Part shown: piece by piece, positions 26,818-34,712 of the stretch
How the letters are laid out: the number at the start of each line of letters is the position of its first letter
Numbering within the stretch: the first letter of the stretch is position 1
NCBI GenBank assembly: GCA_001643675.2
Contig: LSRY02000057.1
Span: 310,001-374,000, forward strand
Source: Monocercomonoides exilis PA203
Taxonomy: Eukaryota; Protista; Preaxostyla
DNA length: 64,000 nucleotides
Direction: 5' to 3'
Made by a program: the position numbers and the translations under genes
Notes under the pieces: generated by a model
Seen by the model: only the letters and a program-made list of their open reading frames with translations
Told to the model about the DNA's origin: nothing
Databases searched by the model: none

Positions 26818-29800
26818 TCACACACGATGCTGAAGTTGAAATTTTGAAGTGTCCAACGCTGAATGCGGCTGCTGTGAAGTTGAGGGAACAACATAGCTGT
26901 AAATAGATGATGACAAAGAAGATTTTGAAGATGTTACAGAAGAAGCAGAATAATCACGTGTAACAGACGATGAAGCAGAAGAATAGTCATTTCTTGATGT
27001 GTTCGATTTTTCAATATCTTTTCTGTCTGAATGGTTGCTTTCAAATTGCTCTTCTTCTTCTTCCTCCTCTTCCTCCTCTTCTTCTTCCTTTTCCTCTTCC
27101 TCCTCTTCATACTCCTCATACTCCTCCTCAGACTCCTCCTCATTTCCCATCATTTCTGCCTGTTCTCTTGACTCCTTCTCTTTCTCTTCACTTTCTCCCA
27201 CCATCTGATAAGGGTTCGATGTATGCAACGGATATTGAAGTGGTGAAAGCGACTCAACTTTCTGTGCTTGTTTGCTCTCTGCTTTCGTCTGGCGCATCGG
27301 ATGCGACGAGATCAGCGCATACGAAAGCGGATGGGGCACATCAGGCGACGCAACCACAGCTGAGGCTGAATGAACGACATGAGGTGACACAAGAGAGGGA
27401 GAAAAGAGAGAAAGCGACAATCCTTCTGCTGCTGGCAATGATTCGGGCGTTGAAATAACAGATGAATGAGGGCTTTCAGATGGCTGAGATTTGGAGGAGT
27501 GAGGGGATTCGAGAGAAGAACGCTGAGAAGGTGAAGGATGATGCTGCTGTGAAGGAAATTGCTGTGAAGATGAGTTTGAAGATGGTGAAGAAGTGTTTCG
27601 TGGGGCAGCATTTGTAGCAAATGATGGAGTATTTCCATTTCCATTTGATTGATTTGCTTTCAGAGGCGAATAACGCTGTTGGTTACCAGTTAGCTCACCA
27701 TTTTCACTCGATCTGCCAGAACGATGTGAATGCTTTGATGTGTCTGGATGTTGTGTTGATGCACCTTTATTGTCTTGTCTGTTTGTTTGAGATGGCTCTT
27801 CACAGAAACGACGCTGACGTTGTTGATGATGAGGATGATGATAATTGCGCAGCCTGTGATGCCTGCAAGGACAGCAGAAGCGATTGTGCTGGTGGCAATC
27901 ACAGAAACACGCACAATTACACCTATGCTTTTGTAGCGGTTCTTCCAAAGGAGCATCTTGCTTTTCCTCATTCTTTTCATTCTGTTTGCATTCATCCTTC
28001 TCTTCTTCAGGGAGTGTTTGCAACTGTTGTGGTGTTGATTCTTTTGGCTGTGTTTTGCGAGGTGGAGAATAAAGAGGGGAATACGGATCATCAGTCGCAT
28101 GGTACATCAGAGGTTCCACACTCTCTCCTCTGCTCTGATAATCGGCCACTCCGCTGCTTCTGCTGCTGATTGCTGCTTTTTGTATCTGTCTGATTTCATT
28201 AAGCGGATCCTTCTCTTCAAAAGCCGATGAAGATGAAGATGAAGACGTGTCTGTTGGGTGTGTTCCAGAAGAAGGATAAGGCTGAACCATCATCCCAATC
28301 TTCTCTCCAAGTGCTCTTCCGTAACTCCCATACACTCGCTTTGCACCCACTCCCTTTGAAATAGAAGGTGCTTTCTCTTGCGTCTCATTCGAAATACTGA
28401 CACGTCCTTTCTTTTTCTTCCTCTTTGATGAAGACTGTGCCAAAGCCACAGCATCCGCCATCTGCTTCATCTTCGCCTCTTTCTCTGCAAACTCCTCTTC
28501 GATGATGCGTCTGGCAGCAAAGTATGTTTCTGCCTCAGATGGATCGATTGACACTGGCAGCGGCGGATGCGGCTGAAAACTCTGTGAAAGAGGAGAGGAA
28601 GGGTCAAATGTGCTGCTGTGGGGTTCTTGGAAGGAAGTGAATGAAGAGCGGAATGGAGAATTACTCTGATTCTGGTTTCCTCCGCGCGGAGAAAGAGAAG
28701 ATTGTGATTTCTGTATAGATGGGGAAGAAGAAGAAGAGGAGGAGGAAGAAGAAGGAATTGAAGTGTTTTTCGAGTCAAGCGGAGAAAGCGAAGCTAAGCC
28801 GTAAGAGGGAGACAAAGGAACAATTGGCTGCTCAATTGGAGATGCTGTGTATAATGCCCCAAGAGCAGCTGTTGATGTTGGGTCTCTTGTTGTCAGCAGC
28901 CCAACATTCACAGGAACAAGCGGGGTTGTCAGAAGCTTCTCTTCTGAAAGAGGAAGAGGCAATGCTCTTTTCACCCGCTTTCTTCCTCTCTTCTTTCGTT
29001 TCGCGCTGTTTGCAGCTGAATTTACTGGCAATCCTTTTTTGGACAAAGAAGAAGTGCTTTTGTTGCTCAATTGATTTGGCCTTCTCTCTGATTCAGAAGG
29101 CAAACGGTCTGATTGTGCTTGAGGAGTGGCTTTTCTATCATAATTATTATAATTCGCATTATTACCTCGTTTAACTCCCTTTTTGTTTTGTCTTCTTCCT
29201 CCTCTTCCCAAAGGCATTCTCATCGTTTTTGATATCCTTTCCCATTCGTCTTCTGAACTGCCATCTGTTCCATTCTGTTCATCTCCAGCTTTTTCAGCAT
29301 CTTCACGAGTCTTCTCTTTTCCCCTGCATTCTTCATTCACATCATCATATTTTTCATCATTTCTGCCATTGCTCTTCTCCAAAATCCACTTCCCTTTCAG
29401 CTCTGTCACTTTCGGCTTCCCGCCGCACATTCCAACAACCCCTTGGAGCAGAGGCCTTGCTGAGTCTACAAACGGCGTCTGGCACTTTCTGATGTTCCTC
29501 GTTTTGCCAGCAGGCACCCACGGCCTCAGCCCATCCTGTGTGTTCCACAGAGTGGCCTGTGTTGGCGACAAGGAACGAAGCGGATCGCCTGGCTTGATCA
29601 ACACTGTCCTCTCATTCGATAAGGAGTGTGAGTGTGTGGAGGAATAGCGAGAAGGTGAAGCAGAGGAAGCAGAGTGAGATGTGCTGCGGGGTGGTGATGC
29701 TGACATGCTTCTTCTTCGAGAATATTCTGTTTCTGAGTACGAAGAAGCAGACAGCGAAGCTGAATGAGAAGAGCGCGATGATTTCGAGCGATGCCTGCCA

Positions 29801-31349
29801 GCAGGACGCAGCACGTATTCAGAGGAAGGACGAATGATATGCCTCATGCGGGACAAAGTACCTCCATCAAAGGCTTTTCGTGGCGGTGACGTTGGAGTGC
29901 CTCGCTGTGAGTATTTTGTTGGGAAGACAAAACGGAGTCCATTTGGAGACAGACGCTGGCTGTATCCATTGAGCACTTGAGACGATGGAGAGGCACCTGG
30001 AATCAGCATTTCCCTCTGCTCGCTCCCAACTGGGGCTTCAGAACACTCGCTCTCAACAGACGACTCTTCTGACTGCTCTTTTTCGATGTTTGAACTGTCT
30101 TCCATTTGCTGCTTATGAACTGTTTTGTTACGCTCATTCTTTCCTTTCTGTTCTTTTTCTTTGAGTGGAGACTTCTGCTTTCGATGATTGTTTGTTGGGT
30201 CCTGCTTTTCAATATCATCTGACAAGCGATCTCTTTGCAGAGAAGGTGAACAACGACGTGCTTGCACTTCCTTTTTACCGTCTGCAAATGAATCTTCATC
30301 TTCAACTTCTGATCTTTCTTTTTCTTCTTCTTTTTCAATATCCTTTTCGTCAGCTGGCCACTGTTTCTGTCTTGAGCCTTCCACTTCTTCATCAGCATCA
30401 CGATGCTTCTTGTTGCTTGCTTGAAGACGTGTTCCTTGATTTCTTTTTCTTTGTGCAACACCTTTTCCATCGCATTCATCTTCCACGCAATATGCTTGTC
30501 TCTCATCATTTGTCTTTGAGTCATCATAGTGCAATTTTGACGTTCCATATAAGAGTCCCCTTTCAGGTATTTCACTTCTATTAGATTCATCGCCTTTTGC
30601 CATCATATCAGAAAAAGATTGAATACCGCCACTACCAACAAGCGGAGGGCGCTGCTGTCTTCCAGTTGCAGAAAAATGCATAGGCGCATCAAAAAGTGAA
30701 GGATCCTTTTCAACAACGCTTGACAGCACCGGGCCAAGTAATTCTGCTCGTTGTCTCATATTTTGCCCAAATTTAAGCATCGACCTAACATAATTTTGAT
30801 GTGCAATTGTTGCAAGCTGCCTCAATTCTTCCCGCCTTTGTTTTTCAGTCCGAACTCGAGGAATCCTTTCTTTTGAAGGAGATTGATTTTGATTGCGAAA
30901 CGGAACTTGTTGAGATTTTGCAACGTAAGAACGTGAATCTCTTCGTTCATAATCGCTTGACGGAATTTGGTGAAATAGTGGCTCAGGCGTGCAAAAAGAA
31001 ATTGAATTTAAAGAAGAACTATTTATAGAATAAATTGGTACGCATATTATTGAATATTGTAACAAACCGTTGTGGATAAGAAGGAACCTGAAGAAGTGAG
31101 TTCTTTTTGAATATATATCAATTCAACATTTGAAAAACATAGCGTGAAAATATAAAATAATTACCTGGTGAAATTTTGCTTCTGAAAGTGAGTGTTCAGA
31201 ATCGTCTAAATGATCTAGACGAGTTTTTAGATTTGAAATTACGCTGTGTTCAAAAGAAAAGAAATTGAAGCAATTTCCGTTTTAGCATTAATCATCAAAA
31301 AATGCTTGCAAAAATAATATACGAAATACCTTGAAAAGCCAGGCTCCAT
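26818..31349 (-). CDS. Large hypothetical low-complexity protein (4 exons)
   Basis: ATG at 31349. GT-AG introns at 31244-31329, 31088-31164 and 31019-31067 splice in frame (MEPGFSSVISNLKTRLDHLDDSEHSLSEAKFHQVPSYPQRSSLN...) into the long ORF ending at 26818. Ser/Arg-, Glu- and Cys/His-rich segments. Confidence 0.75.
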
Positions 31350-31449: not shown

Positions 31450-34400
31450 ATGGTCAAAAAGGAATTGAAGAAGACGAATTCTTCCCATCCCAAAAAAACT
31501 GATATTAAGATACCTCCATCGCTTCGCGAAAGAAAAGCAAGAAGAAAGAAGAATTACAAGAAATACTATTATGGAGTTGGAATTTCGATTGCTGTTGTAA
31601 TACTTTTAATTATTTCAAACAGACCAAGAAAGCAAAGTGTAAATGCCACAAAAACAGAAGATGAGAAATATGATGGAACAAAGCCACCAGCAGATGAGTT
31701 GTATAAGCAAGTTGAAAATGATCTTAGAAGAAGTGCACCACTTCAAGCCTATTTTTCAACAAAAGAATTGATGGAAGCAGAAGGAAATTCAACTCGTTCT
31801 CTTATTGCCAGGTATCAAAGTGCTTTTTCATTGGGTGACTTTGAAACAGCAGTCAATCTGATTACAAAGGTTTGATTCAAATCTTCAATTGATTTATTTT
31901 TGAAAATATATCCCTTTAGCTAGAACTTCGTAAGCGTCTTCCTATGCCATACGATAGAGTTCTGAAAATGCTTGATGAACAAAAACAAGGGCAAGAAATA
32001 CACCACAAACAAATTGACAATGTTTTTAACACTCTCGATCCAAATAACATTATAAGGAAATTCGAAAATATCAAGCCAGTTAACGCATCAGAGTTATGTT
32101 CAGCATCTACAAAACAAAATAATTCTGTTGATCCTCAAAATACATATGTGAATTCTTTGATGGAAACATTGATAGTTGAAGCTGAAAGAAATAAATCAAT
32201 GAAATCGCTTCTTCCATATTATCGAGAGCCATTATCATCTCCTTTTAATTCTATTTTAATGAACAAGGATATAACAGCAATTGTCAAAAGTGAACAGGAG
32301 ATCAAATCTTTCATAAAGAGTTCGCATATATTAGATGATGGATACTACAAAGTGAAGCCAATTATCAATGATGAGAATTACTTAGATTTTGTTTCTTCAA
32401 AAGGTTTGAAGATGCAAGAGTTATCTGCAACTCAGTCACAGAAAAATCCAGAACTTGATCTGTATCTTGATTCGCTTTATAAAGCAGCTCATTGGTTCAA
32501 ACGTCTTAACACGTCCTTTGTTGAGAACGATGAGAACCCAATTCTTGAAGAATGGGCAGACAGTCTTCCTTCTCTTAATGATGAAGAATTCAATGAATCG
32601 AAAGCGACTGTTCTGAACATCGAAAGAAACGAGACCTTCGAGCGATATATGCTGGCTCATTTGGCTGTGAATGTTGCTGTGTCACACGGATTTATCCTAC
32701 CTTTACATGGGCCAGCACACGAACAGTTGACTCGCCTTGTAATGAAAATAGGCGAGCTTAACTGGGGCGCTGATGTTTCTTTGAGCGGAGAAGGAAAAGA
32801 CAAAAAGACAGTTACTCAAGTTAGACAGGAGCTGTATGATTCTGCAGTTTCCATGATGATCAATGTGCTTAACAGAGAAGGAACAGAAATGAATGAAAAC
32901 AGTCAGAAAATGAAAGAGGAGGTGAAGCGAAGACAAGACAACTACAACAAGAAAGTGGCTAAGCGCGCGGCAGAAGAAGAGAAAAAGACACGGATTGGAG
33001 AAGGCAGAGGACTATCAGAAGAGGAAATCACAGATTGGATGATGGGGGCAGATGAGGCAGAGATAGAGAAAGTGCAGAAGGAACACATGATGCGCACTTC
33101 TTGCGAATGGAGTGGAAGAGCTGCCACTATATTCCATCCAGACATTGCTGTTTTGATTGTTCTTGACATCTTCAATGCGGCTGTAAAAGTGGCAAATGAA
33201 ATAGCCGAAGAGAATAAGTTGGCTGCAAACGAGGCACAGAAAGGACTTAGCAGCGGAATAAACAATATTTTAACACCAGCATTTATTAAAGATTTGCATT
33301 CGCAAATTTCTCGTACTTCTTCTGTTGCCACTGTCTTTGATGCTACTCGAAACACCAGCTATGTTTCAGCGTTTCAGAGGGGACAATTCAAGAAATACAG
33401 AAACGACCGCTTGCTTGTCGAGAAAGAGCACTCAGCCAAGAAGTCATCATCAAAGTTGCAGAAACTTGTGTCGAAGCATATGCGTGAGATAGAAAAGACA
33501 CCAACTCCAGACGAGATTAAAGAATGGAAGGACACTTTAACGGAATATACTCGCCCATCATTGCAGGTTGCGGCAAAAATCTCAGGCAAAGCTGACATCC
33601 AAAAGACACCAGAGAATGAAGTCAATGAAGCAGCGCAACAAACTGAGAAGAAAAATCATAAAAAAGAGAAATCAATTGAAGATCATCTTTCGGAGTTGTG
33701 CGAAGCTACAAGAAAGCTTATTGCTGAAGCTGATTCAAAAGACGAGACAAACACATCTCTCGAATCTCTTGTACGCCACTCCCCAACAATGATAGCTTCG
33801 TGGTTCATTGATCAATTCCTTGCTCTTCTTCCTTTCCAGGCGCTAAACGAGCCAGTTGCACAACTTGTTGGTTCAGCAATTCTGATGCACTTTAACATGC
33901 TACCACTTTCTTTATTTGATCCCAACATCTTCCAGTATTCATCTGGAACGACTGTTCCAGCATACAGATCATCCTTTTATTTCAATCGCTTTGGTGTGGA
34001 GGCTGCTGATAGATCTGATTCAATATTACCTCTTGCTGATACGATCATCGGACACCAGGAGCGATTTTTGGTCACAGCATTGTCACTTGGCACGACTGTT
34101 ATTCCAATGCAAGGGAAGCTTCGTCACGTTCAAAACATCGTTGAAATAAGACAAAAGGAGATCGATAGCGAAATTGAGAAGGATAAAGAATACTCAAAAA
34201 GACTATGGGAAGCTATTGACAGAATGAAGAACGAAACAGTATTGTTTGCGAACGAATTTATTGCAAGTCGAAACTCAAATACGAGCAATATCACGTATTC
34301 TGTAGAGGATGGGAATGCCAACAACACGGAGGAAACAACACGCTTCCCACTTCGATTCTTCATGGAAGAGCAGAAGATGAAAGCCAGCAACAAAAGTGAG

Positions 34401-34712
34401 CAAATTGGGGATAACATTCGATTTAACGCTTCTGAGGCGGAAGAAGTCGAAGCTGCTCCGGTTGTGTCCATTCACAGAGACGATCCCCTTTCGATCCTGC
34501 CACATTTCACACTTTCAATCCAATTTGACCCAGTTGCACCGACACACCTCACAAAGCTAGCAGTTGTCAGAGTTATTCGCGATGACAGTGATTTGATGAG
34601 TAAAAACGAACTGTTGAAGCCCTTCTTTTTCCATTTGTCATCTGATGCAGATTCTTCAATCGTTTTGTTCAAGGAATGGCTGAAAAATGTGTTTTCTGCA
34701 ATTTTCGGATAA
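31450..34712 (+). CDS. Type II membrane protein (~1070 aa) with a degenerate Fic/Doc-like domain
   Basis: An intron at 31870-31919 (GT..AG, 50 nt) joins ORFs 31450.. and 31944.. in frame. Basic N-tail, then TM 'YYYGVGISIAVVILLIIS'. Fic-like segments 'LTPAFIKDLH', 'RGQFK', 'IASWFIDQFLALLPFQALNEPVAQLVGSAILMHFNMLPL'. Many N-x-S/T sequons. The gene model is secure; the Fic call is moderate. Confidence 0.7.

Follow-up and report, generated by a model that had tools for sequence, protein, structure and literature searches.

An oxymonad family of putative FICD-like membrane proteins with a degenerate Fic motif

The window examined here, a stretch of 64,000 nucleotides from Monocercomonoides exilis PA203 (contig LSRY02000057.1, positions 310,001 to 374,000 of the forward strand), contains at 31450-34712 on the plus strand the two-exon gene MONOS_3112, which is transcribed and spliced and encodes a protein of 1070 residues. 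An initial annotation, made from the letters of the DNA, proposed that the product is a membrane-anchored protein of the Fic fold in which the catalytic motif has been replaced. The locus raises two questions: is a Fic fold really there, and what kind of protein is built on it when the residues of Fic chemistry are gone? Our answer, to which we would assign a probability of about 0.8, is that MONOS_3112 is one of a small group of related proteins, specific to oxymonads, whose ancestor was a FICD/HYPE-type protein; the build and the Fic fold have been kept, and the residues of Fic chemistry lost.

FICD/HYPE is the AMPylase and deAMPylase of BiP in the endoplasmic reticulum (ER) lumen, and its sole known role, to our knowledge, is that of an enzyme turning BiP on and off through AMPylation. 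The build of FICD (tail, anchor, two TPR motifs, linker and Fic domain), its inhibitory motif and the role of its TPR part in BiP recognition have been described, and it is considered to be the single eukaryotic Fic protein, confined to metazoans (PMC12409994).

Evidence for the Fic fold

Three tests bear on the fold of MONOS_3112, each using different information. The first is comparison of sequence profiles. A profile of the core region of the family (A3, 225 positions) was searched against 177,635 distinct sequences from PDB, and the top four matches are all Fic proteins, namely BT_2513 (3cuc; E = 0.0017) and three entries of IbpA Fic2 (3n3u, 6siu and 4itr; E = 0.012 to 0.016). In these alignments, the segment isPFeaynepvaQ is placed on IHPFEDGNGRIAR of 3cuc and on the Fic motif of IbpA Fic2; in 3cuc, the helix and the flap that precede the motif are aligned as well, LTpqFvkdlH with LTESFIRELN and GkfkksrN with GEYKSRPN. 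As for longer profiles, A6 has 3cuc as its sole match (E = 0.01), and the full-length profile A2 finds the same protein at E = 0.33. Five collinear blocks match in order, and the matches, which are exclusive to one family, are collinear over about 140 positions.

The second test is structural. An AlphaFold2 model was built without templates from the alignment of six family members (see below), and its helices with a predicted local distance difference test score (pLDDT) of 60-79 fall exactly in the conserved blocks. Foldseek's candidates for this model were re-aligned with VIA-align; each of the 27 leading rows is a Fic protein, with Z of 12-17.8, and the first unrelated rows are TPR proteins with Z of 11.4 or lower. 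Leading the list is C. elegans FIC-1 (5jj7; Z 17.8, 268 residues aligned at root mean square deviation (rmsd) of 9.1 Å, model 72-865 against 141-474), followed by BT_2513 (3cuc; Z 17.6, 221 of 262 residues, rmsd 3.2 Å, model 369-868), human FICD (6i7g; Z 16.3, 273 residues aligned, rmsd 7.8 Å, model 78-871 against 103-440) and C. difficile Fic (4x2c; Z 16.2, 201 of 207 residues, rmsd 3.2 Å, model 371-870), with SoFic, a mycobacterial Fic and AnkX (Z 12) among the later rows. The Z values are to be read against the level of about 14 that helical models can attain by chance; with Z above this level, a uniform family and coverage of the whole domain, the result for the predicted model is clear. 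The low-confidence model has the features of the Fic/Fido superfamily fold, i.e., a helical core, a loop between the central helices and a flap ahead of it; another loop is found in the Fic-fold region at residues 807-841.

The third test relies on the features of the ESM Atlas. For the whole protein, the nearest clusters are those of FICD, combining Fic and TPR, at 0.85-0.88, a hint and no more when taken by itself. With residues 369-873, Fic accounts for 29 of the 30 nearest clusters, at 0.90-0.92. The three tests, which draw on separate kinds of information, lead to one answer; we take the Fic fold of MONOS_3112 as established and have very little doubt about it. In this respect the initial annotation is borne out, and the peptides on which it relied are all in place: LAVNVAVSHG within residues 378-397 (32631-32690), LTPAFIKDLH at 591-600 (33270-33299), RGQFKKYRND at 627-636 (33378-33407) and LPFQALNEPVAQ at 777-788 (33828-33863). 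Rather than lacking a Fic core around the motif, the model aligns to Fic proteins over residues 369-871.

The degenerate motif and its relatives in oxymonads

The family has six known members, four in M. exilis (MONOS_3112 and its paralogues MONOS_2030, MONOS_1170 and MONOS_391) and two in Blattamonas nauphoetae (BLNAU_1749 and BLNAU_2512). A six-frame search of the M. exilis genome finds three loci besides the window gene, on contigs C69, C23 and C14, and the core profile A3 likewise finds exactly four loci. An exhaustive phmmer search of 1.8 billion cluster representatives returned oxymonad proteins only, including short N-terminal fragments from one sequencing run, and nothing that would connect them with canonical Fic. 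In 5.8 billion proteins, word-indexed searches (with exon 2, with profile A3 at E <= 10 and with the full profile A2) returned only MONOS_3112 itself. Pairwise identity among the six members is 21-34%, and long intact open reading frames, at 25-34% identity, are found in both genera, which, together with a common intron position, argues that the function has been maintained and that the genes are not decaying.

In the six-member alignment, conservation is strongest by a wide margin in the block to which the initial annotation had drawn attention; its consensus is AAWFIDQFLxIxPFxxxNEPVAQLLxSAILMHFGxLPLSLFDP, in which F769, F773, P778, F779, Q788, S792, P802 and P808 are invariant. Other conserved blocks are AHLAVxLAxSHG (A389, V390, G404), LTPxFxxxLH (H600), RGKFKxxxND (G628), LLxxTR (L733, T737), SLLPLxxxI (S841, L845, I849) and a C-terminal one (F953, L1005, P1014, W1060). 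All six members share H600 and G628, and the four M. exilis paralogues have K631, N635 and D636 in common. The blocks are separated by Glu/Lys-rich insertions, the lengths of which differ greatly between paralogues; BLNAU_2512 is among the members poor in them.

It is within the best conserved block that the Fic motif falls: HMMER alignments map HPFx(D/E)GNGRxxR to L777-P-F-Q-A781-L782-N783-E784-P785-V-A-Q788. The catalytic His is found in none of the six members, its position being occupied by L, E, R, S, K and S, and the motif of competent Fic enzymes, HxFx(D/E)GN(G/K)RxxR, is lacking. The Asp/Glu position has A, S, T, A, S and G; the first Gly is replaced by L, L, H, Y, F and Y, and the second by Glu in five members and Phe in the sixth; the first Arg is replaced by P, P, A, V, P and I, and the last by an invariant Gln. 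Only Pro, Phe and, in five of the six, Asn are kept, and these residues anchor and shape the loop in Fic structures and are not catalytic. The loss of the catalytic His and of the phosphate-binding loop, initially noticed in a single sequence, extends in this way to the whole family. With the His base, the Asp/Glu metal ligand, the anion-hole glycines and both phosphate-binding arginines replaced, in part by bulky or acidic residues, ATP binding and AMP transfer of the Fic type should be impossible, and we would expect MONOS_3112 to do neither in the manner of Fic enzymes.

The placement of the inhibitory helix is less exact. The model has a helix in the right place (Table 1), which makes the initial assignment plausible, and A389, V390 and G404 are invariant in this region; however, there is no conserved Glu, the candidate positions are H396 or H403, and the register of (S/T)xxxE(G/N) is approximate rather than residue-exact.

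No canonical Fic gene accompanies the family. A six-frame search of the M. exilis genome with PF02661 gave no matches, and the same search was positive in 7 of 14 control genomes; DNA coding for HPFx[DE]GNG is likewise absent from the M. exilis genome at up to one mismatch. The genome of M. exilis has four motif-less Fic-fold genes and no canonical Fic gene.

Could the remodelled pocket, on a fold that has been kept, catalyze another reaction or bind another small ligand, which would make MONOS_3112 a neo-enzyme and not a pseudoenzyme? A precedent is AvrB, in which the Fido fold is retained and the Fic motif is missing, and which nevertheless acts on its target. The loop that replaces the motif lies in the best conserved part of the family, with P778, F779, Q788 and S792 invariant and N783-E784 present in five of the six members, and this exceeds what pure scaffolding would need; the chemistry of the Fic and Doc relatives is, moreover, known to be diversified (PMC4454073). 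We nevertheless find this explanation improbable, as there is no conserved candidate base at or near the His position, the side chains at the anion-hole glycine positions (L/H/Y/F and Glu) should fill or repel the phosphate site, and the Pro, Phe and Asn of the motif are structural in Fic folds, so that their retention is expected without catalysis.

Some other observations concern the relatives. The annotated model of MONOS_2030 (P0002, 1135 residues; L009:1065-4178 on the minus strand, contig C69 of genome G000 at about 1907564-1910677) lacks 43 residues (KVLSDQFVLTLH...MERG) that lie in frame in an uninterrupted open reading frame and take in the Fic helix and flap conserved in the family; a false intron has probably been removed here by the annotation. 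Two partial homologues from run SRR13490892 (L012:1019-2286 and L013:345-1251) have the tail, the anchor and the TPR exon, followed by a diverged exon 2, and their intron is at the codon position of that in the window gene (GT.. after ..ALQ or ..LQM), so that the family and the intron are present in at least one further oxymonad-like organism. BLNAU_1749 (P0005) starts later than the other members, without the basic tail, anchor and TPR part; its loop, KPFTSFSFPVAQ, in which Asn is lost too, is the most degenerate of all. Either the gene model is truncated, or BLNAU_1749 is a soluble branch of the family that has decayed further.

Domain architecture and origin

The part of the protein ahead of the Fic domain resembles that of FICD. 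Residues 37-59, modelled as a helix over 25-56, are the only strongly hydrophobic segment in this part and have an equivalent in five of the six members; preceded by the basic tail, they correspond to the single-pass signal-anchor of the FICD type, in a predicted orientation. The sequence has 17 N-x-S/T sequons, 16 of which lie past the anchor, compared to 9.2 +/- 2.6 in shuffled sequences; this excess, though only about three sigma, fits a luminal or extracellular location. The anchor is followed by model helices at residues 81-93, 97-111, 115-128, 131-143 and 151-178, the last being a long linker. Foldseek's best matches, which fall on this part, are TPR domains, namely those of CHIP, Hip and PP5 (E of about 0.04, about 94 columns, rmsd 2.4-2.5 Å), and the VIA-align rows with TPR proteins (Z 10-11.4, rmsd 2-3 Å) cover only residues 73-187. 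Neither exon product has a Pfam TPR match, even at E <= 10; in the model, all the same, two TPR motifs and a linker helix are found between the anchor and the Fic domain, as in FICD. The basic tail, the membrane helix, a TPR-like helix and the numerous sequons had all been noticed in the initial annotation, and each of them is recovered here.

Descent from FICD is favoured because FICD and FIC-1 are collinear with the model over both the TPR and the Fic domains, with top Z values, and because the whole-protein ESM features put FICD clusters in all first ranks. The same facts stand against the explanation in which a bacterial Fic domain was acquired laterally, and the anchor and TPR-like repeats were gained independently of metazoan FICD; so does the order of anchor, two TPR repeats, linker helix and Fic, which is the order of FICD, and so do the spliceosomal introns at a conserved position and the host-like composition of the family genes. 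What speaks for lateral acquisition is that in sequence no protein matches better than 3cuc, a Fic protein of Bacteroides, and that the Fic region alone has viral, fungal and bacterial Fic, not FICD, in its nearest ESM clusters. Fic genes are said to have entered eukaryotes laterally several times (PMC4454073), and FICD is held to be metazoan-restricted among eukaryotes (PMC12409994). On balance we consider such a transfer rather improbable; of the two origins initially entertained, a divergent relative of FICD and a bacterial gene acquired laterally, the former is favoured and the latter less so.

Several points weigh against the reading of MONOS_3112 as a descendant of FICD with a dead active site. 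The E-values of the sequence profile matches are modest. The Pfam Fic family, PF02661, scores neither exon product in hmmscan at E <= 10, where the scan of both products yields two irrelevant sub-threshold matches, DUF3175 and VIT1, and a phmmer search of PDB with exon 2 gives no match. The AlphaFold2 model is poor overall, with a mean pLDDT of 49, and Foldseek alone finds nothing significant (no match with E <= 0.001; FICD entries at E of about 0.2), so that the comparison with FICD and bacterial Fic structures suggested by the initial annotation gives Fic and FICD in VIA-align and nothing significant in Foldseek by itself. The catalytic positions have been mapped through sequence, by HMMER alignment to 3cuc and IbpA. 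The pocket retains conserved residues (N783, E784, Q788 and S792), and loss of the motif is no proof of total loss of activity. Finally, the preference for FICD descent over lateral transfer is an argument from domain order only. As the catalytic features are absent and the Pfam threshold is not reached, MONOS_3112 is best filed, judging from its sequence, as a putative catalytically dead variant of the FICD kind and not as a Fic enzyme.

A chance likeness, with MONOS_3112 being a lineage-specific helical membrane protein, would be in line with the missing Pfam and PDB phmmer matches, the low model confidence, the absence of non-oxymonad relatives in searches of 1.8 and 5.8 billion proteins and the Z of about 14 that helical models can reach at random, but it is hardly credible when three methods of different kinds arrive at one family and at the same residues, the 27 top structural rows are all Fic with the next unrelated ones at Z <= 11.4, and five collinear sequence blocks match in order.

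Table 1. Features of MONOS_3112 in the window
Feature	Residues	Position in the window	Strand	Evidence and remarks
Exon 1	1-140	31450..31869	+	Basic tail, signal-anchor, first TPR-like helices; translation equals P0001 1-140; covered by RNA contigs
Lys/Arg-rich N-terminal tail	1-36	31450..31557	+	Sequence; cytosolic placement predicted by the positive-inside rule
Single hydrophobic segment, putative signal-anchor	37-59	31558..31626	+	Kyte-Doolittle mean 1.83 over 19 residues
Two TPR-like helix pairs and linker helix	81-143 and 151-178	31690..32033	+	Stretch spans the intron
Intron, 50 nucleotides, GT..AG		31870..31919	+	Skipped by RNA contigs
Exon 2	141-1070 and stop	31920..34712	+	Translation equals P0001 141-1070; 100% match to MONOS_3112
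Poorly modelled spacer	179-368	32034..32603	+	pLDDT < 50; conserved IIRKFExIKP block; P193 invariant in the family
Fic-fold domain	369-871	32604..34112	+	VIA-align, PDB profiles, ESM features; interrupted by long insertions
Helix at the place of the Fic inhibitory helix (ETFERYMLAHLAVNVAVSHG)	378-397	32631..32690	+	Model helix 378-395
Glu/Lys/Arg-rich helical insertion	438-545	32811..33134	+	Length varies among paralogues; long helices, low pLDDT
Fic helix LTPAFIKDLH and flap-like RGQFKKYRND	591-600 and 627-636	33270..33407	+	HMMER alignment to 3cuc
Lys/Glu/Ser-rich insertion past the flap	645-723	33432..33668	+	Only in MONOS_3112 and MONOS_2030; pLDDT 30-54
Degenerate Fic motif LPFQALNEPVAQ	777-788	33828..33863	+	At the place of HPFx(D/E)GNGRxxR; HMMER alignment
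Family-specific C-terminal extension	875-1070	34122..34709	+	Modelled separately; conserved in all six members
Helix-backed antiparallel sheet	989-1070	34464..34709	+	Part of the C-terminal extension

The C-terminal extension is absent from FICD. Its separate model has a mean pLDDT of 66, with 76-90 in the ordered parts, and consists of a 45-residue helix, a disordered stretch, an antiparallel sheet of six to seven strands and a terminal helix. Comparisons of the extension gave no convincing relative in PDB with Foldseek (E of 0.076 or weaker), a best Z of 8.0 among 48,161 chains with VIA-align, and template modelling scores, normalised by the model, of 0.45 or lower in the ESM Atlas, all at noise level. 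Likenesses to the C-terminus of Med17 (Mediator), to frataxin and to the FP domain were set aside as generic helix-backed sheets with noise-level scores.

The gene model is supported by transcripts. The span of the gene covers two open reading frames on the plus strand, 31450-31875 and 31944-34712, which belong to one gene. The intron begins with GT at 31870 and ends with AG at 31919, leaving whole codons at both exon edges, and RNA-seq contigs, which come from a single study with four runs, span the whole gene and omit exactly the 50 intron bases. Searches from the window were run per exon, and the full-length product is represented by the single database protein that exon 2 finds at 100% identity, P0001 ('uncharacterized protein MONOS_3112', 1070 residues). 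The position of the intron is shared with the C69 paralogue and with the homologues on contigs L012 and L013.

Upstream, in divergent orientation, the window has an open frame of 1415 codons (26818-31065, minus strand) that is rich in runs of Ser and has a long run of Glu and a stretch rich in Cys and His, CNCACFCDCHQHNRFCCPCRHH; by eye, there is no obvious domain in it.

Predicted role and place among Fic-fold proteins

MONOS_3112 would be inserted as a type II protein, with the tail in the cytosol and the remainder in the lumen of the ER or of the secretory pathway, where it would be N-glycosylated. Fic enzymes recognise their targets through the TPR repeats, the flap and the pocket; in MONOS_3112, where the TPR repeats and the flap are conserved and the pocket is remodelled, the same parts may hold a luminal partner, making the protein a non-catalytic binder or adaptor.

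The TPR domain of FICD recognises BiP (PMC12409994), which makes this ER Hsp70 the obvious candidate for the partner. This is the weakest step of the proposal, and, resting as it does on analogy with FICD, the identification of the partner as BiP is doubtful. Complex prediction for a BiP-like Hsp70 (L017) and the TPR part (residues 70-190) gave an ipSAE of 0.00, which is evidence neither way. The genome has two genes for BiP-like Hsp70, L017:1501-3405 (plus strand) and L018, on contigs C58 and C31; their products end in ADEL and HAEL, not in KDEL or HDEL. Both frames are open ahead of the first Met, so that the signal peptide is probably encoded by a separate upstream exon. Loss of the Thr that is the AMPylation site of BiP was considered as an indicator and dropped, as this residue is general to Hsp70s.

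The closest known systems are human FICD/HYPE and C. elegans FIC-1, with which MONOS_3112 shares the predicted short cytosolic tail, the signal-anchor, two TPR motifs, the linker helix and a Fic fold of the class II type, the structural alignments being collinear over TPR and Fic at Z of 16-17.8. By prediction, both MONOS_3112 and FICD are N-glycosylation-competent luminal proteins. The differences lie in the active site, where, in LPFQALNEPVAQ, both Arg of FICD, its catalytic His and Asp/Glu and the Gly-x-Gly of its anion hole have given way to other residues, and in the inhibitory/deAMPylation Glu, which is not conserved; PF02661 is unmatched. MONOS_3112 is also 2.3 times as long as FICD, by virtue of insertions within and ahead of the Fic fold, and has an added C-terminal alpha/beta domain, and M. 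exilis has four paralogues in place of one FICD. Fic proteins of class II from bacteria, namely BT_2513 (3cuc), the Fic of C. difficile (4x2c) and Shewanella SoFic (3eqx), are aligned over nearly the complete Fic domain with rmsd of 3.1-3.5 Å; unlike MONOS_3112, they are soluble, have neither TPR nor anchor and possess intact HPFx(D/E)GNGR and the inhibitory Glu.

Fido-fold proteins that do without a working Fic motif include the Bartonella Bep effectors with degenerate motifs, which, like MONOS_3112, retain the helical Fic/Fido core and the flap. In AvrB of Pseudomonas syringae, the Fic/Fido core and flap are kept and the signature motif is absent or degenerate, as in MONOS_3112 (PMC4454073). 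AvrB and Bep, however, are secreted bacterial effectors that act in host cells, whereas the MONOS_3112 family appears to consist of endogenous eukaryotic membrane proteins with the FICD architecture, and our searches with MONOS_3112 returned no sequence or structural match specific to AvrB or Bep. In the literature, we found no paper that links Monocercomonoides to AMPylation or describes a pseudo-FICD or an oxymonad Fic protein; in a search for FICD together with pseudoenzymes, the latter word was seen once in PMC12409994, in the title of a reference that is not about FICD.

A bolder extension, which we regard as unlikely, is that the arrangement of transmembrane anchor, TPR and Fic is ancestral to eukaryotes and not a metazoan invention, and that in oxymonads an expanded family with a remodelled and strictly conserved pocket (PF...NE...Q...S) and a new C-terminal domain has taken on a new job, which could be a new transfer chemistry or that of an AMPylation-free 'reader' regulating BiP or another luminal client.

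The whole family is overlooked by the current annotation, in which MONOS_3112 is an uncharacterized protein with no Pfam domain. On the reading that we favour, i.e., descent from a FICD-type protein with loss of the catalytic residues, the FICD architecture is present in a deep-branching, mitochondrion-less lineage of protists, which would widen the known range of this build and add a Fic member to the families of pseudoenzymes. The family would then offer a natural 'catalysis-free' FICD, useful for asking which functions the TPR-Fic scaffold has when it only binds.

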